Source of the DNA: Selaginella moellendorffii
Taxonomy: Eukaryota; Plantae; Lycopodiophyta
Direction of reading: 5' to 3'
DNA length: 64,000 nucleotides
NCBI RefSeq assembly: GCF_000143415.4
Contig: NW_003314263.1
Span: forward strand, 3,354,956-3,418,955
This document shows positions 12,020 to 58,057 of this stretch, piece after piece. The translations under genes and the position numbers were made by a program. The number at the start of each line of letters is the position of its first letter. Within the stretch, counting starts at the first letter, position 1. The notes beneath the pieces are model-generated. The model had not been told where the DNA came from and made no database searches. It saw only the letters and a list, made by a program, of their open reading frames with translations.

Positions 12020-12133
12020 GCCAAAGTGGATGGCTTTGTTTTTCTTTCTTTCGTGTATATATACGGTATGGATCTGCAAGTTCTCTCGTTTCCTTATTTC
12101 TCTCAGCTGCACAAATCGGAGGCTTTACTTTTT

Positions 12134-14357
12134 TTACAGTGACAGCAGCCTCCGCTGCTTAAAGAATAATACGAATGCGAGAAAGATCGCGATGCCAGCA
12201 ACGCCAGACGTGATGAGAATCCACTTGAAAGCTCGCGGCTCGTCAAAGAGGTCAATCTGGATGTTCATCCCGAAAACACCCGCAATCACGCCAAAAATCG
12301 CCACCACGAACGTCGCGGTCGTGAGCAGCAACTCGAACTGGATCAGCTGGTTCCTCACATTGTCCTGGACGATCAAAACCAAAGACCATCGATCAAAAAC
12401 CGAAAAACCTTGGATCGACAACTTCTCGGAAAGTACCAGTTGGATGTTGATGAAATCCTCGGTGTCGTCAATGTACTCCTTGAGCTGTGTATAACCAGCG
12501 AGATTAACACGGATAACACCACGAGCCTTTCTTTTTTTCACTCGAAAAACTCGAAACCTTCGCCTTACCGAGGTGAGCTTGTTGAGCGTGCCATCGATGA
12601 CAACAAAGTAGGCCTCGAGCAGCATCTCCAGCTCCTCCACTCGCTCCGTTTCACTGTCCGAGCCGGGTGGCTGGACCAAGAGGTTTCTTCCCAGGCTCAT
12701 CGTCTTGTCCAGGCTCTTGATCTTCTCGGTCGGCGGGCTGCCAACCGGAGACACAGGGGCCGACACCGACGCACAGACGTTGTTTGAGTACAAGAAGCCC
12801 TCGGCTCGCTCCTTCTTCTCGGTTAGATACATCTCGGCCATGTCACCGTCGTCGTCCATGAGGTGCTCGATCTCGTCCCGGACCTGGAAGTTCGTGTGAG
12901 ATGAAGTATCAATGAGGTTTGTGAGCTTGGGAGGCTCGAACAAACACCAGTGAAGTTGGAACGAAGATGAAAGAGCAAGGAGTGTGAACAGAACCAAAGT
13001 TCGTGTGAGAAGAGAGAAGCAAAGATCAACAAGTGAGGTTTGTGAGCTCGGGAAGCTCAAGAAGATGGAGTAAAGTTGGAACGAAGAACAAGGTGTGACT
13101 CCAGCAAACTTATAGGAGAGAATGAGAAGAGAGAAGCAAAGATCAACAATGAGGTTTGTGAGCTTGGGAAGCTGGAGGAAACACCAGTGAAGTTGGAACG
13201 AAAATGAAAGAACTAGGAGTGTGACTTAGTGGTTTCAATGGAAAGAAATGAAAGAACTAGGAGTGTGACTTAGTGGTTTCAATGGAAAGAAAGCTTCCAA
13301 AGGGGAAACGGAGTAAAAGCAGTACCTTTTGGACTCTCCTGGTGAGTGCCACGAGCCTGCTCTTAAGCCTACGAACTCGCTCCAGGTTGAGCGTGCTGAT
13401 CTTCGAGGTTAGATCGTCCAGAACTGGATACGCTTCCTCTTCAAGCTCTGTAGCCTGTCAAAAAGAGCAAAAAGACCACCGGTGAGTAGCAAAAAACGTG
13501 CCACAGGAAAGAGGAGAAAGAACAAAAGAGAAAAAAGAAGCAATCAGTAGTAGTATCACAGAAAAAGCAAAAGGCACCAAAAGAGAAAAAAAAAATATTG
13601 AAAAATCTCAGAGAAGAAAAAAAGAAAAGCATGAAAGTTCTTCCAAAGTTTTCTTCCAAGAATCGAGGAACTAGAACTTGGTTACCTGTGTGTCAAGATA
13701 CGTGCACGCCGACTCCAGCGCCACCTCGAGCGCTCGAAACTCGAACGGCAAATCGTCCGCTGCCGACGATCCGCTAAACATGTCCGTCTCTCTCATCAGC
13801 GCCGCCCTCCTCATCTCCTGCTTGGCCGGATGATCCTCAGTCCCACACTCCCAGCTCCCTCCTCCACCACCTCCACCACCTCCAAATCCAATCGCTCCAA
13901 TCCCACCACCACCACCATATCTCCCGGCGATGTTGCTACTGCTCGAGGAGCTCGTCATCCTCGGCATCAATCGCCGCTGGAGCTCGCTCACGTACTGGAG
14001 CACGTAGTGATCCAGCGAATTCAAGAGCAGCACCTCGTCCGCGGTGATGATACACCGGATTTGCTCCAAGTTGACAACGATGGCCTTCTCTCGTCCCAGC
14101 AGCGTGGAAGGATAGACAAAGAGTGGATCCAGCAGCCGCAAGTCGCGAGCCGGAAGCTCACACCTCCTCATGATGCTGAACTTGTCCATCTCTAGCACCT
14201 GGGAATTGCCCGCGCGGTCGATCCGGATCCACGACCGGATGCCCTGCCCGCGCTTCTTCAATCCCACCACGTCCATCCCCTGGAAGAGCGGCTTGGGCAG
14301 ATTGGAAGTGGGCGATTGCGCGCGATGGAGGAGCTTGTATCTCAGATGATCGCCCAT
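12134..14357 (-). CDS. MRS2: MRS2/MGT (CorA-family) magnesium transporter
   Basis: LPARDLRLLDPLFVYPSTLLGREKAIVVNLEQIR; LPFEFRALEVALE; GVFGMN motif in the last exon. Confidence 0.95.
12910..13292. repeat. Tandem repeats in an MRS2 intron (three ~120-bp units plus an exact ~45-bp duplication)
   Basis: TGAGGTTTGTGAGCT.GG.AG...AAGTTGGAACGAA occurs 3x; AAATGAAAGAACTAGGAGTGTGACTTAGTGGTTTCAATGGAAAGAAA occurs 2x. Confidence 0.85.
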
Positions 14358-23623: not shown

Positions 23624-24385
23624 CTAGTCGTAGCAAAGATGGTTATCGACGAGATTGGACGGCTTCCCTCGCAGCAGCACGGGGCACCTCCTCACCGGCG
23701 GAGGCCTCGTGAAATCGATGTTGTAAGTCGTATCCCCATCGAACTTCTGCGGAGGAGGCGCGCTGCGAGTCGGCCCTCCTCTCACAGGCCTCTTCACCTT
23801 CCAGTCCTGGAAGCCCACATTATACGTAGTCTCATCCACGAACTTGGCCCCGGAGTTCCCGAGCGAGCAGCCATGCTTTTGGGGAGCACACCTCTTGGGC
23901 ATCTGCTTTGGGCAGTATCCCACTCCATACGTGGTCTCGTCGTAGAACTGGCCCGACTCCACCTTGTGTGGCTTCTCGGCCCTCCTCGCGGGCTTTTGCT
24001 CCTTGGATTTGTCCCAGTAGTCCACCTTGTAGGTGGTGGCGTCCACGAATGGCCCAGTGTCTTGCTCGCGCGCCGGAGGCCTCATGGGCGCTCGCTTGGG
24101 CATGGTTTTCTTGCCATAGTCGAGCTTGTAGGTGGTGTTGTCGTCGAAGGGGCCGTCGTCCTTGCGCGCCGGTGGGGGCTTGTGTGGGAGGCGCTTGGAG
24201 ATGGGCCACTCCGGGTAGCGCTCGCCATACTCGGACAGGATGTTTGGGTCGTAGTGATTCGTCTCGCGCGACGGGCATTTGTGGAGGCCGCAAGTGCACA
24301 CCACGCACATACACTCGCTCTTCCTGGAGCCGCCGCCACCGCCGCCCGAGGTGGATGCCTTGGGCTCCTCGAGAAACGTAGCCAT
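23624..24385 (-). CDS. SAXO/FAM154 (STOP-family) axonemal microtubule-stabilising protein
   Basis: CMCVVCTCGLHKCP...LSEYGERYP N-term followed by five F.D.TTY..DY/F repeats, the FAM154/SAXO architecture. Confidence 0.82.
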   Translation of the reverse strand: MATFLEEPKASTSGGGGGGSRKSECMCVVCTCGLHKCPSRETNHYDPNILSEYGERYPEWPISKRLPHKPPPARKDDGPFDDNTTYKLDYGKKTMPKRAPMRPPAREQDTGPFVDATTYKVDYWDKSKEQKPARRAEKPHKVESGQFYDETTYGVGYCPKQMPKRCAPQKHGCSLGNSGAKFVDETTYNVGFQDWKVKRPVRGGPTRSAPPPQKFDGDTTYNIDFTRPPPVRRCPVLLRGKPSNLVDNHLCYD

Positions 24386-24640: not shown

Positions 24641-25924
24641 CTACATCTCCTTTTGTATCTTCTTTTGGATTTCACAAATGGTGGTGATTGCTAGAAAGAG
24701 TCCAGTTCCAGAACCAATCACTCCCATCATATTTGCAGCCACGGAAACAACACCAATACCAAACCCTCCAAGCGCTGCTGCCACTGGAATGTACCGGTCG
24801 AGCTCCTTTTTGGTCTGGGAGCTCCTGTGTCCTGGGATTGTCAATCCTTGCTCTTTCCACTCTTTCGCTATATCCTTGGAAGACGATCCAGACAATTCAA
24901 GCCATGCCTTGGAGATTAGAGTGCTAGACACCACCGTGAAGACTGAGTAAATGAGAAAATGGAATGGCTCTTGGATCATGCTCGACGGTGGATGAAAAAC
25001 CTTGTATATAGTTCCTCCCAAAGCGCCCATAATAAAATTCCTGTAACCAAATACGTGCCCCAGGCCTTCGTAAACCTTGCCCACGCTACTTGCGAGCTGA
25101 GTTAAGAACATAATTGGAGTCGTTGCCGTGTAGAACAGACGGATTGAATGATTCATATACTGGCCCCTTCCGTTTGTCACTCTGATGATCATGTTGAGAG
25201 ACTGAAGATATAATATCCCACAAATCACAACAATTGTCAAGATCAGTGTCGAGAGATTTGGGAGATAATATCTGAAGAATGAATGGCGAACTGTCCTTAC
25301 GTTGCAGCTGGATATCAACCCCCGAACCAACTCTACAACCGATCCTTCAAATTCGTCGACTCCTCGAAAGTTGGCGGTGACAGGGCTAAACGCGTGCCAA
25401 ATCACGTCCTCACAAACGCTGCACGCAGTGAAAACGGAAATTGCTGATTGCCCAACACCATATCCCTTTTCTAAAAATTCGTCCATGTAGATTAGCATCA
25501 TAACTGCTAGAACCAGCTGCAAGATCACCAACAGCGAGCTAATCATACCAATTGGGCCATACACTCCCCCAACAATGTTTAAGATCGCCAACACGACTGT
25601 GAAACACACCCCCGCCATCTTTTGTAGCTTGTTGATGGAGTCCTTCTCTTTGATGCAAATAATCTTTCCACCAACTAAAAGCTGGATTGCCATACTTGCC
25701 GTTGCAATCGGACCAATACCCAAATCCATCAGTGTCCCATTTGCGTAGATCCCATAGAGTGGCAATCTACTGCTAATCATGTACACAGACACACACAAGA
25801 CTGTGTTTGCGACCTTTGTTCCCAGTGGAATCCGCAACTTTGGACTCTCAATCTCCACACTGAAAAGCTTGGTGGCCCCTGCAAACAGTCTACTCGCAGC
25901 TCCCTTCATTGTGGACAAAGCCAT
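24641..25924 (-). CDS. Divergent, intronless Sec61-alpha (SecY family)
   Basis: GTLMDLGIGPI, DEFLEKGYG, AFSP...EFEG, IRLFYT, ELSGSSSKDIAK..KEQ...PGHR...ELDRYIP.AAALGG, GSGTG; TATA-like TTATAAATA ~40 bp upstream. Confidence 0.92.
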   Translation of the reverse strand: MALSTMKGAASRLFAGATKLFSVEIESPKLRIPLGTKVANTVLCVSVYMISSRLPLYGIYANGTLMDLGIGPIATASMAIQLLVGGKIICIKEKDSINKLQKMAGVCFTVVLAILNIVGGVYGPIGMISSLLVILQLVLAVMMLIYMDEFLEKGYGVGQSAISVFTACSVCEDVIWHAFSPVTANFRGVDEFEGSVVELVRGLISSCNVRTVRHSFFRYYLPNLSTLILTIVVICGILYLQSLNMIIRVTNGRGQYMNHSIRLFYTATTPIMFLTQLASSVGKVYEGLGHVFGYRNFIMGALGGTIYKVFHPPSSMIQEPFHFLIYSVFTVVSSTLISKAWLELSGSSSKDIAKEWKEQGLTIPGHRSSQTKKELDRYIPVAAALGGFGIGVVSVAANMMGVIGSGTGLFLAITTICEIQKKIQKEM

Positions 25925-26239
25925 CACTTGGTGTTTAGGTTTTTCCTTAGATCGGTCTACTTATTTATAAGATCCGGGGAAAAGGTTCCGTTATTATAAA
26001 AAAAAAGGCTTAAGTTTTAACTCTTTCAAAAAAAAAATTCCGCGATTCTTAGAAAAGGCAGTGACTCTGGCATCATTTTTTTTCTTTGGACAAATTTCTT
26101 CCCTTTTAAGAGAAGAAAATAAGCGATTATGTGTAATCTGGAGACATCTTAAATTACTAAACACAAAAACTTCTTATTCTTTTCTATTAGCAAAAGAGTA
26201 TATGAGAAAACAAAGTAGAACAATTATCTATAAGTCGTC

Positions 26240-27464
26240 CTATGCGTCTTTGAGCGTGTAAAACGATTCAAGGTGGCTCTTGCCGACTGCTCTTCGCTCT
26301 CCATAAGATTTGCGATAGTCCCTGTAGATGAAAGGTGGGTGCCTCACCGGATGTTCGTCGTCCACGAGCCCTTTTGCCGGGACGATGAGAGCGTCGGCCT
26401 CGGGGATGAGGAAGAAAGCCATGGACAGTCGGCTCCGCTCGCTGTTGAGCACAACCTGGTGCTGGACGCTGGGATAGATGTCATTGCTCAGCACCTGTGA
26501 GTAAATCCGAGCATCAGAGGAGAGAAACTATACAACGAAGAAGAAAGGCTTTCTTACCTGGAGAGTGTCTCCAACGTTGACAACCACGGTGCCAGGCTCG
26601 GGCTTGACCGCGATCCATCGGTTGTTCTTGAGAATCTGGAGGCCGCCAACGTCGTCTTGGTGAACGATGGTGATGAGGATCGGGTCGGCGTGTGGACGCT
26701 GTCCCAGGGTCTGCTGCGGCTGAGGACAGGGCGGATAGTAGCAAACGCGAACTGTAGACTTGTCGCCTTTTGTAGCAGTGTACTTGCTAAACGTCGAAGG
26801 CTCCAGTCCAAGCGCAATGGCCATGAGCTCGACGACCTCGATCGCGAGCTTTTGGTAGGCATCGATGTAGTTATGAACGCTCGCACTGGGAAAGAAAAGT
26901 GAGACAGGCACAACGAGATGAAAAACAAGCTAACCTTAGCTCATTAAAGTTTTCGGGAGAAACTTGCCGGATCATGTTGTCTGTGACCTCCTTGTCACCC
27001 GAGAAATGAAACGCTTCCAGCCATGCTTTGGAGAAGACGGACTCGGCTCCAAAGTAGTAACCAATTATGCTATCTGGAAGCCGCACTGCCTTCTTCTTTT
27101 GCTCCAGCGGCAGAGCAAAGAGCTCCTTCCCCTCCGACTCCAGCTTTTCAGTAACATCGCTTAGAACCCCGTGGTTAACAAGCCGGAAGAATCCCCACTC
27201 TCTGGCGGCTTCCATGAGATCCTTGAGCCCCTTTGACCTGGTTGCGGCATCCTCGGACCTCAGCAACGAGATATCGATGATGGGGACGGTGTCCTCGTCG
27301 TTGTAATCGTTGTAAGCAACCTTTGGCCACTCCTCTTGAGACCAGACGTAGTCATCCAGAGTTAAAGAGCCTTGCAAAAACGTAGTGAGCTTGTAGTCAA
27401 CACCGCCTTGAGTACCGCCTTGAGTAGGAGCCATCTTCGAATGCTTGGGAAGCTTGACCACCAT
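26240..27464 (-). CDS. 2-oxoglutarate/Fe(II) dioxygenase (DOXC; GA20ox-like), 3 exons
   Basis: VPIIDIS...EWGFFRLVNHG; YYPPCPQP..HADP; H(QVV) and RLS motifs. Confidence 0.92.
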
Positions 27465-27957
27465 CTATATAGCAGCGCGGAGCTTCTACTCTGGGCCCTG
27501 GTCTTTTGTCCACAACCATGCTGCCACCGGACTACGTAATTGTCTAAAACGAATAGTTGACGACCCCAACGTATCCTGTCCGCACCCTCATTCTTGCGGC
27601 TCCTGTTTGGCCAGCTTCACTGCCGGACAATCGTATATGCCACCATGTGGATACTCGCTCTAAAGTCTACTCGTAAACTGTGGCAAAAAAGAAACAAGGA
27701 CGTAAGTTTCACGACATGACCAAAATGACAGAGGCTACCTTACAAGGATGTTCTGGTGGAGTCAAGGCGGAAGAGCACTGTAGTATAGCAAAGGAAGGTT
27801 ATTATATTTATAAAACGCCTGAACAAAAAAGAAAGCACAACAAAAAAAAAAAGAAAAAGAAAAAAACCACTACATCTTTAGCCACAGGGTCAGAATCGGT
27901 GCGTGCAGGCAAAAAATGTGATCCCATATACATACTACACCAAAGTTTCCTTCCCTT

Positions 27958-31003: not shown

Positions 31004-32231
31004 ATGGCGTATAGGAACTGGGATGGCATGCTAGACAAGAAGAAAAGCAGGAAATTGGATCCCTCAATCTGGTCGCGGCTTCCCCAGGACATCCAACACC
31101 GCCTCATCACTTTCCTCCCATTCCCCACGCTCTGCCGCTTCCGCTCCCTCTCCAAGGATTGGTGCGCAGCAATCCAGCAGCAGCCACCGCGGCAGCAGTG
31201 GTACATTGCCCTTGGCGACGTCTGTGGCAAGTTTCTCATCTCACCCAACGCCATCTCCTGGAAGGAGTTCACTCTCCCCCTTCCAAGGGAAGCCCGGATC
31301 TTTGCCTTGAGCACTTGCTCGGCAGGCTTGGTACTGAGCTATGACTCGACGTTTGCGAGATATTTTGTGGTGCTGAATCCGCTACAACAGACGAGGCGAG
31401 AACTGGGGTGTCCGATGCTGGAGGGTGATCACGAAATGATCTTCGCTGCTATTCAGTCGGCACCACCCTCTGGATCATGGTTTGTTGTAGTCGTGACCAT
31501 AGAGACCAGCTATGGGGTCATGGTGTTCCACCTGTACGATTCGAGGGCCGCGGCGTGGATATCTTCTACGGAATTCACCCCTGTCCAGGAGGATGAAGAC
31601 CTCGTATGCGGTGTCAGAATGAATTGCATCAACTATTCCAACAACTGCATGCTGCTCCAGAACGATCACTTGTACTTTTTAACTGTTTCACCGGGCAATG
31701 TGAGGAGGCTTAAATCGTTCAACGTGTGGAACCCTAAGGCCACCCTTCGAACTCTGGCAACCTGGAATAATCTTCCCTTGGGATTTGAACGGCAACCTTG
31801 GTACGAGGTGGACATGTCCCTCGTCTCAAGTGGAGGTAAGGAAAGAGAGTTGTTTTGTATATGCTGACGACTTTGATTTTGCAGGGAAGATAGTGATTGG
31901 CATGCTCGAAACACATGACAGAAACACAGACGTTAGAACCCTCAGGGTTTGTTTTGTGTATCTGGACGAGGAGAGTTGCAGCTGGCGGGCAATGGCATCC
32001 TTGAGCTTGGGCACTGTTAAAATTCCCAAGTTGATCAAAAAACCCGGAAGAATCTTTATGGTGGCTGCTGGAAATGAACACACTACGGAGGTGACACTGC
32101 TCTTTCATTATAGGTGGAGCTGCATCTTTGATTTGGCTTCTGGAACGTTGCGTAGCAGTAGAAGTTCAAAGAAACAAATGCCGGCTTTTGTTCCCTTCCA
32201 GCCCTCCTTCCATCCCAAACTTTTCCTTTGA
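31004..32231 (+). CDS. F-box protein (2 exons, intron 31836-31884)
   Basis: LDPSIWSRLPQDIQHRLITFLPFPTLCRFRSLSKDW; C-term PFQPSF. Confidence 0.88.
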
Positions 32232-40410: not shown

Positions 40411-40510
40411 TGGTAAGGATATCTTTTGAAGAATTCCCCTAGCTTGAAAATAAAAGGGAAAGGATCCCAGTTTGACTTATGCCAAGAACGGGGCATTTTG
40501 CTCAAGTATA

Positions 40511-42214
40511 ATGCCCTTTATAAACCAGGATAGAACTGTAGCTTGTCACGCTCCCTTCGCTAGCAGGAGAGAATGGTTCCTGGAGATGCAATCCTGCAAG
40601 ACGATCCACCAAGCCCTGGAAATTCGAGCGCAGACATTCGATCCCAATGACACCATCCTCTGCAACAAGCTCCTAGAGATGTTTGGGAGATTTGGCACCA
40701 GAAACTCGCGAGAGGTTTTCGATAGCATGCATGCTCGGGACGCTCACTCGTGGGTGATTATGCTTTCTACCTATGCCAAGAATGGGCATCTGGAACAATC
40801 GGAGAAAATCTTTCAGGAGATCCCTGAGAAGAACATTGTCTCTTGGAATGCAATGCTCACCGCATATTCTAAAAACGGATGTATGCTTGAAGCTGACCAA
40901 TTATTTAACTCTATGCCCCAGTGGGATCTTGTCTCTTGGAACGCTATTGTTTCAGCATATGCCAAATCTGGGCATCTTGAAATGGCCAGATTTTACTTTG
41001 ACCGCATGCCCGTGGCCACAATGAAGTCCTGTACGGCAATGATAGGATCGTACTCGGAGCATGATTTTTTTGACAGGGCAAAGGACATGTTTGACGAGAT
41101 GCCTATGTGGAATATGCTTTCCTGGACATGCATATTAGCAGCATATGCTCAAAATGGGCATCCAGTAAAAACTCAAGAACTTTTCGACTCTATGCCACAA
41201 CATGACCTTATTTCCTGGACTGCGTTGCTAAGTGGTTACAGTTCTCTTGAAATGATACAAAACGTTTTTGATGCCATGCCTCAAACAAATGTTGTTTCCT
41301 GGACAGCCGTTCTTGCAGCATATGCCCAAGAGGGGCAATTACACAAGTCAAAGACTTTGTTTGAGAATATGCCCGAGCACAACCTTGCATCCTCGACTGC
41401 TCTCCTATCAGCTTTCTCTCAAGCAGGACACCTTGAAGAATCTAAAAGTATCTTTCTTGGGATGAGAGAAAGGAATTTTGTTTCCTGGTCTGCTATCTTG
41501 GCTGGGTATATCCACAATGGCAGACTCGATGAGGCGAAGCACGTCTTTGATGTAATGCCTGAGTGGAACATTCGGTGCTGGAATTCCTTGTTATCGGGAT
41601 ATGCTGCTCTTGGGCATATTGACCAAGTTAAATCTTTATTTGACAAGATGCCTGACCACAATAGAGCTTCATGGAGTTGCCTACTGACTGCTCACCAAAG
41701 AAGCGGAAACCTTGTAAAAGTAAGAAGAATCTTCAATTTAATGCCTGAAAAAGATATAATAGCTTGGAGCTCGATGATTGGGGCAAATACTAGCACTGGG
41801 TGTTGCAAAGAGGCAGTTGCTTTGTTTGATTTGCTCAAGTGTGTGGATATCCCTGAGCAACTGTGTTTCCTCTCTGTGTTAGCTGCTTGTAGTGGAGAAG
41901 GAAACTTAATGCTTGGGAAGACAATCTTTATGTCAATGGGTTTGGACTACAAAATTGAAGCCACACACCAGCACTTCAGATGTATGGTTGATTTGTTGTG
42001 TCGAGCGGGTTATCTGGATAGTGCTGAGGAGCTTATAAATTCAATGCCATATGTTCCAGGGGCTGTGGAGTGGGCATGTTTGTTATCTTCTTGTAGAAAT
42101 TATAAGGATTCCAAGCAAAATTCTAGAATTGGTCAGCATGTTTTAGAGATTCTGTTGAGAAATCATGAAGCATCATATGCTTATTCTTTGTTGTTTAATT
42201 CTCATATAGTATAA
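40511..42214 (+). CDS. PLS-class PPR protein (31-aa S-type repeats, E-like C-terminus, no DYW)
   Basis: Repeats F..MP..++.SW..++.AYA..GH; HFRCMVDLLCRAGYL..AEELI..MP..P....W..LL..C; start codon uncertain. Confidence 0.9.
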   Translation: MPFINQDRTVACHAPFASRREWFLEMQSCKTIHQALEIRAQTFDPNDTILCNKLLEMFGRFGTRNSREVFDSMHARDAHSWVIMLSTYAKNGHLEQSEKIFQEIPEKNIVSWNAMLTAYSKNGCMLEADQLFNSMPQWDLVSWNAIVSAYAKSGHLEMARFYFDRMPVATMKSCTAMIGSYSEHDFFDRAKDMFDEMPMWNMLSWTCILAAYAQNGHPVKTQELFDSMPQHDLISWTALLSGYSSLEMIQNVFDAMPQTNVVSWTAVLAAYAQEGQLHKSKTLFENMPEHNLASSTALLSAFSQAGHLEESKSIFLGMRERNFVSWSAILAGYIHNGRLDEAKHVFDVMPEWNIRCWNSLLSGYAALGHIDQVKSLFDKMPDHNRASWSCLLTAHQRSGNLVKVRRIFNLMPEKDIIAWSSMIGANTSTGCCKEAVALFDLLKCVDIPEQLCFLSVLAACSGEGNLMLGKTIFMSMGLDYKIEATHQHFRCMVDLLCRAGYLDSAEELINSMPYVPGAVEWACLLSSCRNYKDSKQNSRIGQHVLEILLRNHEASYAYSLLFNSHIV

Positions 42215-49482: not shown

Positions 49483-50910
49483 ATGGCAATGGCAGGGGGG
49501 TATTTCTCCCATCTCGGTTCTCTCATGGGCTTCATCATGATCCTCAACCAGATAGTTCCGCGCCACGTCTGGTTCCTTCTGGAGCTCAAGCTCAAGAGGT
49601 TTGTCACTTTGCTATGGTGGGAGACAGAGCTCTCAATCCCAGAGTACGTCCGCAACAACACCAACGAGATCTACGACCTGGTCGACCTCTACGTTGCTCA
49701 CCTCACCGACACCAACACCAAGAGCTCGGCAAACAGGATCCAGTTCACGCGAGTGAAGAACGCCAGCAAGCCGAATTGCAACCTCACCAGGGGCGAGCGA
49801 GTGGAGGACAAGTTCAAAGGCGTCACATTCTCCTGGGTCTTCAACGTCACCGAGCCCTCCAACGGCGGAGGCTTCAGCTATTTTGATCGAAGTGGAGGAA
49901 CACAGCGAGAGTACGTTGTCCAAGTTCACAGGAGGCACAAGTATACACTCTTGCCCGAGTACATGAGGGAAGTGATCAAGCTCGGAGAGAGCTTGAAGCA
50001 CCAGAACCAAGACCGGCAGCTCTACACCAACATAGGAAGCTCGGACGACTACAGGAACCAGCCGTGGAGATCGGTGCCTTTCAAGCATGCCTCGACGTTC
50101 TCGAGCCTGGCGCTGGATCCCGAGCTCAAGAACAAGATCGTCCAGGACCTGGATTCCTTCATGGCTGGTAAGGATTTCTTTGAGAGAGTTGGGAGGGCTT
50201 GGAAGCGCGGGTATCTCTTATACGGGCCTCCGGGGACTGGGAAGTCGTCACTCATCGCTGCCATAGCAAACTACACGCAGTACGATGTCTATGACATGGA
50301 GCTGACGGAGGTGAAGAGCAATGCCGACTTGAGGAAGCTGCTCATGGGGATTTCCAACAAGGCGATCATCGTGATCGAGGACATTGACTGCTCGCTGGAG
50401 CTCAAGAAGAGGGGAAAGCCAGCGCCGGAGGAAGAAACCAGTGAAGAGTCCAAGGAGAAAGATGGAGCGTTGCCAGGGAAGCAAGCCAAGAAGAAAGATG
50501 AAGAGAGCAGCAGGGTCACACTCTCGGGGCTACTGAATTTCATCGATGGGCTGTGGTCTTGTAGCGGGAGCGAGAGGATCATCATCTTTACGACAAATCA
50601 CAAGGAAGATCTGGATCCCGCACTGCTGCGGTCGGGCAGGATGGACCTTCACATTTTCATGGGCTACTGTGGATTTGAGGCGTTCAAGGTGCTGGCGTGG
50701 ACTCACCTTGAGATCTCGCAGCACGGCGAGTTTGAGAAAGAGTTTGGAGAGATCGAGGAGCTGATCGCCAAGGTTGAGATCACTCCTGCTGATATCGCGG
50801 AGGCGTTGATCCAGAACAGGGGGAACTCGAGAGGGGCTCTAGAGAAAGTGATTGAGGCTCTTCGGGATCGAATGGAGCAGGGTGCGAAGAAAGAGGGAGA
50901 AGAGGGGTAA
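49483..50910 (+). CDS. BCS1-clade plant AAA-ATPase (ASD/OM66-like), intronless
   Basis: FKHASTF..LA; GRAWKRGYLLYGPPGTGKSS; IIVIEDIDC; TLSGLLNFIDGLWS; LDPALLRSGRMD. Confidence 0.95.
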   Translation: MAMAGGYFSHLGSLMGFIMILNQIVPRHVWFLLELKLKRFVTLLWWETELSIPEYVRNNTNEIYDLVDLYVAHLTDTNTKSSANRIQFTRVKNASKPNCNLTRGERVEDKFKGVTFSWVFNVTEPSNGGGFSYFDRSGGTQREYVVQVHRRHKYTLLPEYMREVIKLGESLKHQNQDRQLYTNIGSSDDYRNQPWRSVPFKHASTFSSLALDPELKNKIVQDLDSFMAGKDFFERVGRAWKRGYLLYGPPGTGKSSLIAAIANYTQYDVYDMELTEVKSNADLRKLLMGISNKAIIVIEDIDCSLELKKRGKPAPEEETSEESKEKDGALPGKQAKKKDEESSRVTLSGLLNFIDGLWSCSGSERIIIFTTNHKEDLDPALLRSGRMDLHIFMGYCGFEAFKVLAWTHLEISQHGEFEKEFGEIEELIAKVEITPADIAEALIQNRGNSRGALEKVIEALRDRMEQGAKKEGEEG

Positions 50911-56173: not shown

Positions 56174-56635
56174 AAGTTCCTCGGTAAAGGTTTCGTTTTT
56201 CTTGGGCTTTCCACTGTATGTATGTATCCTGTTTGGTACAGTAAGAAGGTACAAATGCAGCCTTGTCTCATTTTTTGCTTTTCTACTTAGTGTTACATTT
56301 ACTGACAGTCTTTTCAACTTCAAGATTGGTTACGCAAGCTGGAGTGGTGTTTTGTGTGGACAAGGTTCCCTTTGCATCAATCTTCTCGAAGGATCTAGCA
56401 TTTGAGTAACTTGGAACGAGCTCGCATTTTCCTGGACTGGGAACAGTTCAAAGTCTCGGTCACTGACACTTACATCTTGACCCCAGTTTGGAGCTTCTTC
56501 AACAAGTTATGTGATCTTCGCTATGACTGGCAACTGAAGACATCGTGAACATGACGTAGAAACTCGCACGCCAGAATATAAAGGGGGGTGGAGGTCGGAT
56601 TTTTCTCATTCTCGCAGCAGCAGAAACAGAGCAAG

Positions 56636-58057
56636 ATGGCAGGCGGCTACTTCGCCCATCTCGGTTCTCTCATGGGCTTCATCATGATTCTCAAGCAGAT
56701 AGTTCCTTCTCACATCTGGTTCCTTCTGGAGCTCAGGCTCAGGAGGCTGGTATCCTGGCTCTGGTGGGAGACAGCGCTCTCAGTTCCCGAATACGTCCGC
56801 AACAACAGCAACGAGATCTACGACCTGGTCGACCTCTACGTCGCACATCTCACCGAGACCAACACCAAGAGCTCGGCAAACAGGATCCAGTTCACACGAG
56901 TGAAGAACGCTAGCAAGCCGAATTGCAACCTCGCCAGGGGCGAGCGAGTGGAGGACAACTTCAAAGGGGTGACATTCTCCTGGGTCTTCAACGTCACCGA
57001 GCCGTCCAACCGTGAAGGCTTCAGCTATTTTGATCGAAGTGGAGGAACACGCCGAGCGTACGTTGTCCAAGTTCACAGGAGGCACATGTATACACTCTTG
57101 CCGGAGTACATGAGGGAAGTTATCAAGCTCGGGGAGAGCTTGAAGCGACAGAACCAAGACCGGCAGCTCTACACCAACATGGCAAACTCACGCGAGTGGG
57201 TCTACAGGGACAAGCCGTGGAGATCGGTGCCTTTCAAGCATGCCTCGACTTTCTCGAGCCTGGCGCTGGATCCCGAGCTCAAGAACAAGATCATCCAGGA
57301 CCTGGACTCGTTCAAAGCTGGAAAGGATTTCTTTGAGCGGGTTGGCAGAGCTTGGAAGCGTGGGTATCTCTTGTACGGGCCTCCGGGGACTGGGAAGTCG
57401 TCACTCATCGCTGCCATTGCGAACTACACGCAGTATGATGTCTACGATATGGAGCTGACGGAGGTGCAGAGCAATGCAGACTTGAGAAAGCTGCTCATGG
57501 GGATTTCCAACAAGGCGATCATCGTGATCGAGGACATCGACTGCTCGCTGGAGCTCAAGAAGAGGGGGAAGCCGGCACCGGAGGAAGAAACCGAGGAGAA
57601 AGATGGAAAGTCCGAGAAGAAAAACAAGAAAAAGGAGCAAGAGAGCAGCAGGGTCACACTTTCGGGGCTACTGAATTTCATCGATGGGCTGTGGTCTTGT
57701 AGCGGGAGTGAGAGGATCATCATCTTCACGACCAACCACAAGGAGGATCTAGACCCTGCGTTGTTGAGGTCCGGCAGGATGGACCTCCACATTTTGATGG
57801 GCTACTGTGGATTTGAGGCGTTCAAGGTGCTGGCGTGGACTCACCTTGAAATCTCGCAACAGGAGCAGTTTGAGGAGGAGTTTGGAGAGATCGAGGAGCT
57901 GATCGCCAAGGTTGAGATCACTCCTGCTGATATCGCAGAGGTGTTGATCCAGAACAGGGGGAACTCGAGAGGGGCTCTAGAGAAAGTGATTGAGGCTCTC
58001 CAGGATCGAAAGGAGCAGGCTGCAAAGAAAGAGGAAAATGAGAACAAGCAGGAATGA
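56636..58057 (+). CDS. BCS1-clade AAA-ATPase, close paralog of 49483
   Basis: Same motifs and near-identical sequence; TATAAA at ~56577. Confidence 0.95.
   Translation: MAGGYFAHLGSLMGFIMILKQIVPSHIWFLLELRLRRLVSWLWWETALSVPEYVRNNSNEIYDLVDLYVAHLTETNTKSSANRIQFTRVKNASKPNCNLARGERVEDNFKGVTFSWVFNVTEPSNREGFSYFDRSGGTRRAYVVQVHRRHMYTLLPEYMREVIKLGESLKRQNQDRQLYTNMANSREWVYRDKPWRSVPFKHASTFSSLALDPELKNKIIQDLDSFKAGKDFFERVGRAWKRGYLLYGPPGTGKSSLIAAIANYTQYDVYDMELTEVQSNADLRKLLMGISNKAIIVIEDIDCSLELKKRGKPAPEEETEEKDGKSEKKNKKKEQESSRVTLSGLLNFIDGLWSCSGSERIIIFTTNHKEDLDPALLRSGRMDLHILMGYCGFEAFKVLAWTHLEISQQEQFEEEFGEIEELIAKVEITPADIAEVLIQNRGNSRGALEKVIEALQDRKEQAAKKEENENKQE

Follow-up and report, generated by a model that had tools for sequence, protein, structure and literature searches.

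A plug-less Sec61-alpha paralog encoded by an intronless gene family under purifying selection in Selaginella moellendorffii

Can a Sec61-alpha channel subunit lose its plug in nature and still be kept by selection? This question is raised by a 64,000-nucleotide stretch of the Selaginella moellendorffii genome (contig NW_003314263.1, positions 3,354,956 to 3,418,955; hereafter the window), which carries on its minus strand a divergent, intronless gene of the SecY/Sec61-alpha family, here called gene A. We find that A is an intronless copy under purifying selection encoding a plug-less Sec61-alpha, and that it has relatives at two other loci, A2 and B. This three-locus family, which combines a stepwise erosion of the plug with a shortened lumenal loop 7 and a hydrophobic substitution within the polar cluster at the lateral gate, is new. 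We judge it somewhat probable that A is a real, selectively maintained gene of the A/A2/B family and that it encodes an alternative alpha subunit of the endoplasmic reticulum (ER) translocon with rewired gating.

An intronless Sec61-alpha gene without a plug

The reading frame of gene A (24641-25927, minus strand) comprises 428 amino acids (aa) counted from a GTG, or 427 aa if translation starts with the ATG at 25924, and ends with a TAG stop codon at 24641-24643. It is uninterrupted in the window copy, with no stops or frameshifts. The public annotation (NCBI/UniRef, P0218) is a 422-aa model that starts at Met6. The features of the gene, with its transmembrane (TM) helices numbered as in canonical Sec61-alpha, are the following.

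25962..25969, minus strand: TATAAATA box (TATA), 45 nt upstream of the gene A ATG
24641..25924, minus strand: coding sequence, free of introns, of A, a divergent Sec61-alpha paralog; 427 aa followed by the TAG stop
25715-25765, minus strand: LPLYGIYANGTLMDLGI, residues 54-70
25736..25747, minus strand: YANG, residues 60-63, the sole remnant of the canonical 21-residue plug segment (TM2a), from the alignment and the AlphaFold2 (AF2) model
25589..25591, minus strand: Leu112 at the TM3 position in the polar cluster of the lateral gate (human Q127, yeast Q129), from the alignment
25085..25087, minus strand: Ser280 at the TM7 position of the polar cluster (human N300), from the alignment
25004..25039, minus strand: shortened lumenal TM7-TM8 loop, NFIMGALGGTIY, 6 residues against 21-23 in plant and vertebrate proteins
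24881-24898, minus strand: ELSGSS motif
24824..24835, minus strand: PGHR in cytosolic loop 8/9, with the conserved ribosome contact Arg367 kept, from the alignment
24785-24796, minus strand: RYIP motif

Residues 64-418 of the protein match the SecY family PF00344 in Pfam (E=6.9e-49, 167.3 bits against a cutoff of 32.2), which assigns it to the SecY/Sec61-alpha family; the same protein gave no match to the eukaryotic and archaeal plug family PF10559 in the Pfam search. A phmmer search of all PDB chains aligned it with human Sec61A1 (8b6l_A, E=3.3e-77). This alignment contains a single clean gap of 17 residues placed exactly over the plug. Four more residues are missing from the TM2-3 loop, and about 15 from the lumenal TM7-8 loop. 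A first-pass annotation made from the DNA letters had described an intact 427-aa intronless frame, strongly diverged, lacking about 17 residues of the plug and about 15 of the TM7-8 loop, and retaining ELSGSS, PGHR and RYIP; each of these elements is found as described. The motif that it placed at about 25735-25765 is also present, although that position was only approximate, since the exact span is 25715-25765.

The resemblance to canonical Sec61-alpha (plant SEC61A; human SEC61A1, 7tm3/8b6l) extends to the SecY domain, the fold with ten TM helices (TM-score 0.92), the GHR motif, the basic residue of loop 6/7 (L6/7; R253 in A), ELSGSS, RYIP and a pore ring that is for the most part hydrophobic. 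The differences are as marked. The A protein is only about 40% identical to its canonical counterparts, is shorter (427 versus approximately 475 aa), comes from an intronless gene and has a different N-terminal helix. It lacks the plug helix, has the 6-residue TM7-8 loop, and carries Leu in TM3 in place of Gln or Glu and Ser in TM7 in place of Asn. The pore ring of A comprises I70, A74, I162, T166, M272 and L411, against I, V, I, I, I and L in the canonical proteins, so that two residues are smaller or more polar; the ring of B has Gly and Ala at two positions.

An AF2 model of A, built with a 73-sequence alignment, has a mean predicted local distance difference test score (pLDDT) of 92.2 and a predicted TM-score (pTM) of 0.87, and includes all ten TM helices and the L6/7 beta-hairpin. 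TM1 (residues 34-53) is connected to TM2b (71-85) by a non-helical loop. The 10-TM Sec61 fold is thus predicted with confidence, and no plug helix is seen in the model. Its closest Foldseek match is the closed rabbit Sec61-alpha 7tm3 (TM-score 0.92, root-mean-square deviation 2.1 Å), and other matches include the Methanocaldococcus jannaschii plug-deletion crystals 2yxq and 2yxr and yeast Ssh1 (2ww9). In the model of B (pLDDT 88.7), the plug site is occupied by a four-residue helix (69-72) within a low-confidence segment (pLDDT 51-69). An organellar transit peptide was considered for the N-terminus of A and set aside: this end is just 5 residues longer than in canonical proteins and is modelled as the usual N-terminal helix.

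A three-locus family with a graded plug

The S. moellendorffii assembly contains both haplotypes, and six copies of the gene were recovered from it at three intronless loci.

Locus A, haplotype 1: the window (scaffold GL377567.1), 427 aa, intact
Locus A, haplotype 2: L003:6001-7284 on GL377609.1, two in-frame stops
Locus A2, haplotype 1: L004:4941-6239, lying on the scaffold of the window at a distance of about 61 kb, 432 aa, intact
Locus A2, haplotype 2: L001:10001-11056 (P0001), open where visible, a run of N hiding the N-terminus
Locus B, first copy: L002:10001-11335, 444 aa, intact
Locus B, second copy: L005:5001-6335, 444 aa, intact (RefSeq protein XP_002991889.2)

The frame is open in five of these six copies. 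The description of A as an intronless, diverged copy stands, whereas its treatment as a lone retrogene does not, as it is one of three loci whose plugs are eroded to different degrees. The two haplotypes of locus A share a common gene order: F-box, SCAMP, dioxygenase, Sec61-like, SAXO. P0001 had been considered as a copy of the window locus; this assignment was rejected, P0001 being A2 on the other haplotype and L003 the true A allele.

The allele and the paralogs of A are named in public records only as hypothetical proteins or, automatically in UniRef, as "Translocon Sec61/SecY plug domain-containing protein". This plug-domain name was given automatically to P0001, P0002 and P0043, yet none of the three matches the plug Pfam family. 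Two gene models are truncated, P0043 by an in-frame stop and P0001 by an N-gap. A full-text literature search (Sec61 with Selaginella, the gene identifiers, and plant Sec61 plug paralogs) returned no paper on these genes, and the gene numbers of the paralogs are absent from the text form of the Selaginella expression-atlas supplements.

The length of the plug segment was measured by counting the residues that separate the conserved GI closing TM1 from the T(L/V)M motif with which TM2b begins. Counted in the alignment with plant Sec61-alpha from the conserved Gly of YG to the Gly of GT, the segment of A is likewise 4 residues long, against 21.

Canonical plant and vertebrate Sec61-alpha: 21 residues
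B: 18 residues, TKSLSENPYQLLTNSSHG
A2: 8 residues, SPEHASQR
A: 4 residues, YANG (YANR in the other allele)

All plug-segment insertions and deletions across A, A2 and B are in frame. Among the 70 other Sec61/SecY sequences of the alignment, 66 have a segment of 20-24 residues, and the remaining four have 19, 18, 15 and 10. The 10-residue segment belongs to P0062, a vertebrate-like Sec61-alpha that is elsewhere near-identical to vertebrate Sec61A; it is most likely a gene-model artefact of exon skipping and not a second natural loss of the plug.

Other derived features are common to the three paralogs. The TM7-8 loop has the same 6-residue length in A, A2 and B, the TM2-3, TM3-4 and L6/7 loops and the C-terminal tail are shorter, and the N-terminal helix is new. 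At the TM3 position of the polar cluster all three proteins have Leu (E or Q in 46/70 other aligned sequences), and at the TM7 position all three have Ser (N in 42/70). The TM2 residue of the cluster, T75, is kept in A, A2 and B. The loop 8/9 Arg of the GHR motif is likewise kept in all three paralogs and is Arg in 58 of the 70 others. The changes in loop 7, the other loops, the N-terminus and the Leu and Ser positions occur in all three paralogs and therefore predate the complete deletion of the plug.

Selection, promoter and origin

The ratio of nonsynonymous to synonymous substitution rates (dN/dS, omega; NG86 method) is 0.18-0.35 in all 15 pairs among the six copies, allelic pairs included. 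For A and A2, dN is 0.06-0.07 and dS about 0.2 (omega 0.27-0.35); for A and B, dN is 0.24 and dS about 1.07 (omega 0.22). Bootstrapping over codons gave 95% confidence intervals of 0.18-0.41 (A-A2) and 0.17-0.31 (A-B), and none of the 300 replicates reached 1. The selection claimed in the first-pass annotation is therefore borne out, with intervals that exclude neutrality. The window copy has neither lesions nor an omega near 1; two in-frame stops are found in its haplotype-2 allele.

The pattern holds within loci. The two A alleles (omega 0.18) differ at 20 synonymous and 11 nonsynonymous codons, 8 of the latter lying outside a 10-codon cluster that contains the stops, and the corresponding counts are 5 and 4 for A2 and 16 and 10 for B. 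After the split of A and A2, 10 nonsynonymous changes are assigned to A and 13 to A2, with 16 unpolarised; this even division indicates that A alone is not decaying. About 4% of the possible point substitutions in the gene A frame would yield a stop, from which the probability of an open frame after a neutral branch of 0.1 is approximately 0.006.

The TATAAATA box is invariant in A, A2 and B, for A and B in both haplotypes, at an A-B dS of about 1. A conserved leader lies downstream of it in all three, and the sequence upstream of the box is not alignable among the three loci. The retention of the box and leader points to DNA-level duplication of a promoter-bearing gene and to continued constraint on the core promoter.

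A maximum likelihood (ML) tree of 77 sequences unites A, A2 and B, with full support, in a clade within eukaryotic Sec61-alpha. The stem of this clade measures 1.14 substitutions per site; canonical plant sequences have 0.02-0.04. The free ML tree draws this clade towards other long branches and leaves the support for its position open. Constraining it to land-plant Sec61-alpha gave a likelihood 41.8 log units (lnL) better than the free quick search, with a p-value of 0.91 in the approximately unbiased test (p-AU), so that a plant origin is compatible with the data and favoured. The canonical plant Sec61-alpha gene that we compared, which is not the S. moellendorffii parent, is intron-rich and spans 11,090 bp for 608 codons (1.8 kb of coding sequence), whereas A, A2 and B each consist of a single open reading frame, in keeping with the retrogene character first ascribed to A. 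Read by eye, the 3' flank of A has no obvious poly(A) tract, and none would be expected to remain because the event is old, as judged from the stem length. The plant placement and the lack of introns fit a retrocopy of plant Sec61-alpha that diverged rapidly and was then duplicated as DNA. Most likely, the family began as such a retrocopy, which gained a promoter with a TATA box and multiplied later through duplication of the DNA.

Gating, alternative explanations and significance

The plug and the lateral gate of Sec61 are coupled by a gating motif in which an apolar patch of the plug clamps the polar cluster of the lateral gate, formed in yeast by T87, Q129 and N302 (Trueman et al., PMC3518225). 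All three cluster positions were polar in 264 of the 264 eukaryotic Sec61 sequences examined in that study; the yeast mutations Q129L and N302L stabilised the closed channel and raised the hydrophobicity threshold for signal sequences, and polar residues placed in the plug patch suppressed these defects completely (PMC3518225). Yeast and E. coli both survive deletion of the plug, but their channel then switches between an open and a closed state and lets ions and water leak through (PMC2585858). Such laboratory mutants are the ground on which an ancestral channel without a plug has been proposed (PMC8675477). The seven Sec61 inhibitors tested, without exception, bind a pocket made of the lateral gate and the plug in its closed position, and the yeast substitutions Q129L and N302L make the channel resistant to them (10.1101/2022.08.11.503542).

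Set against this background, the paralogs may represent a channel whose lumenal, or vertical, gate has been dismantled, with the plug eroded from 21 to 18, 8 and 4 residues, the TM7-8 loop reduced from about 21 to 6 and the TM3 clamp residue replaced by Leu, on a 10-TM channel fold that keeps its mostly hydrophobic pore ring and its cytosolic ribosome-contact loops. By analogy with the yeast mutants, the degenerate plug patch of B and its absence from A2 and A would destabilise the closed state, and the TM3 Leu of all three paralogs would stabilise it. The seal would then be left to the pore ring and to a more hydrophobic contact between TM3 and TM7 at the lateral gate, in place of the clamp between plug and polar cluster, and the expected result would be an altered threshold for signal sequences and probably a weaker seal. 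The kept Arg of loop 8/9, the L6/7 hairpin and its basic residue, seen in the alignment and the model, would argue for continued docking of ribosomes. Such a protein might serve as an alternative ER translocon alpha subunit in a restricted tissue or condition outside the sampled RNA data. Since the inhibitor pocket needs the plug and the lateral gate, and Q129L and N302L are resistant, one may speculate that the paralogs should be intrinsically insensitive to these inhibitors. As for the gating consequences, the ER location, the partner subunits and the expression of this translocon, or its description as "leaky or neofunctionalised" in the first-pass annotation, we can only infer them. In its fullest form, the proposal would take the plug series as the record of a channel that lost its vertical gate and was compensated at the lateral gate by the Q/E-to-L change, giving a working plugless translocon with a shifted threshold and inhibitor insensitivity, maybe in a specialised cell type; we consider that this whole chain of events is quite unlikely to hold.

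Engineered plug deletions (M. jannaschii SecY, 2YXQ and 2YXR; yeast sec61 and E. coli SecY delta-plug) resemble A in that TM2a is removed and the remaining fold is kept, and experiments on them give grounds to expect viability, prl-like gating and leak in the paralogs. They differ from A in being laboratory losses of 6 or 11 residues, whereas A carries a natural loss of 17 residues fixed under purifying selection. The paralogs moreover add the shortening of loop 7 and the polar-cluster Leu, which in yeast has the opposite, closed-stabilising effect. A second parallel is yeast Ssh1 (2ww9), which matches A in sequence and structure and is likewise a fast-evolving, lineage-restricted second alpha subunit beside an essential canonical Sec61. 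Ssh1 arose from a fungal duplication and retains its plug; the Selaginella clade is independent of it, groups by preference with land-plant Sec61-alpha and is intronless.

Several observations weigh against a maintained translocon gene, and most of them would suit a retrocopy family nearing pseudogenisation, which was constrained earlier but has since become redundant and silent and is decaying, at locus A if not beyond it. The family is restricted to one species in the searches made: word-index searches with A and B and an exhaustive phmmer search of 1.84 billion representatives detected no ortholog outside S. moellendorffii, and nothing closer than canonical Sec61-alpha, in collections whose lycophyte coverage is uncertain. 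Matches of 41-46% identity were examined as candidate orthologs and rejected, as they are canonical plant proteins within fused gene models. Because no orthologs were found in any other species, long-term conservation of the paralogs cannot be shown. In three raw S. moellendorffii RNA-seq runs from one 2026 study (tissue not known; some 12% of the reads of each run, mapped at 97% identity or above), the gene A frame received zero reads and is silent in the material sampled, and none of the indexed RNA runs contains gene A sequence. The adjacent 2OG-Fe(II) dioxygenase is covered in the same runs at 10-30x depth with both of its introns spliced. The haplotype-2 allele of A has a TGA at codon 229 and a TAA at codon 238 (L003:6685-6714), and, if these stops are real, the plant can do without at least one dose of gene A. 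In the comparison of A with A2, the segment running from TM1 through the plug to TM2b (residues 34-90, 25655-25825) has an omega of about 0.94, against 0.17-0.50 elsewhere, from which the plug remnant appears to be either unconstrained or diversifying. The overall omega of 0.2-0.35 reflects a constraint far weaker than would be expected of an essential translocon subunit. Finally, the gating consequences are all extrapolated from yeast, E. coli and archaeal mutants. Such decay nevertheless seems decidedly unlikely to us. The A alleles differ by the excess of synonymous codons given above, A, A2 and both B alleles are open across 427-444 codons, the A branch has no nonsynonymous excess and the TATA box is invariant. 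The stop cluster occupies 10 codons and consists of two compensating pairs of 1-bp indels plus substitutions, with the frame otherwise kept and the length of the reading frame identical. Either the allele is truly null, or the cluster is an artefact of base calling or assembly, as the paired compensating indels and the low-coverage Sanger origin of this haplotype may suggest. A second compensated indel pair lies at codons 277-278 of the same allele.

A constrained gene could also be an ordinary spare translocon of near-canonical function, in which the short TM1-TM2b loop or its neighbours form a substitute plug, as happens in crystals of SecY with an engineered plug deletion, and the deletions are merely tolerated. 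The best superposition of the A model on closed Sec61, the pore ring that is still mostly hydrophobic (I, A, I, T, M, L) and the retained ribosome-contact Arg residues speak for this explanation. With only 4 residues left between the conserved glycines, and 17 lost against 11 in the engineered full-plug deletion, there is little material for a new plug, and the joint occurrence of loop-7 shortening and the Q/E-to-L change in all three paralogs gives the impression that the gating motif was remodelled in a coordinated way; the very long stem of the clade also speaks against ordinary function, and we regard the explanation as rather unlikely. A role outside bulk import appears highly improbable: the paralogs would serve, for example, as a regulated channel for the leak of ions or Ca2+ from the ER, as a conduit for retrotranslocation or as an inhibitor-insensitive spare channel. 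Mammalian BiP closes the channel via loop 7, and the loss of both plug and lumenal loop 7 removes elements that limit leak; the inhibitor pocket uses the lateral gate and the closed plug, and the paralogs naturally have Leu and Ser at the positions of the two yeast resistance substitutions and no plug. Against such a role, the conserved cytosolic ribosome-binding loops argue for continued co-translational use, and we know of no Sec61 inhibitor relevant to Selaginella. An alternative ER translocon alpha subunit with rewired gating is the reading of gene A that we retain.

The genes around A may bear on its expression. A gene downstream of it on the same strand encodes a homolog of the stabilizer of axonemal microtubules SAXO1-2, and none of the three RNA-seq runs gave a read for it either. 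A plant whose sperm are flagellate is expected to restrict its axonemal genes to those cells, and a tissue-restricted expression shared by gene A and SAXO is a possible lead. In the dioxygenase gene, the reads show variants at about 50% frequency (26395, 26708, 26729, 27072 and 27132), so the sampled plant was heterozygous, with both haplotypes present and transcribed. The other genes noted in the window are given below with these two.

12030-14357, minus strand: MRS2-like Mg transporter, exon-sized open reading frames, an ordinary plant gene
23624-24385, minus strand: SAXO1-2 homolog, 256 bp downstream of the gene A stop
26240-27600, minus strand: 2OG-Fe(II) dioxygenase (DIOX_N), with two short introns defined by read joints (26493-26555 and 26886-26934)
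31004-31867, plus strand: F-box protein open reading frame, an ordinary plant gene
40472-42214, plus strand: PPR protein open reading frame, intronless, 580 aa, an ordinary plant gene
49483-50910 and 56588-58057, plus strand: intronless BCS1-like AAA-ATPase genes (AAA_assoc, AAA and At3g28540-like lid)

The BCS1-like AAA-ATPase family comprises nine or more members that share at least 90% identity and are distributed over both haplotype scaffolds.

The plug, and the gating motif that it forms with the polar cluster, are treated as near-universal in SecY/Sec61, and only deletion mutants made in the laboratory have shown that a channel can do without them. Should the genes prove silent, the family would be only a curiosity of retrogene decay. 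If our reading is correct, A, A2 and B would constitute a natural experiment on how a channel stays sealed and selective without a vertical gate, with the intermediates preserved in the same genome. They would supply ready-made variants for testing models of gating threshold and leak, and would reveal the compensating substitutions that evolution has actually used.

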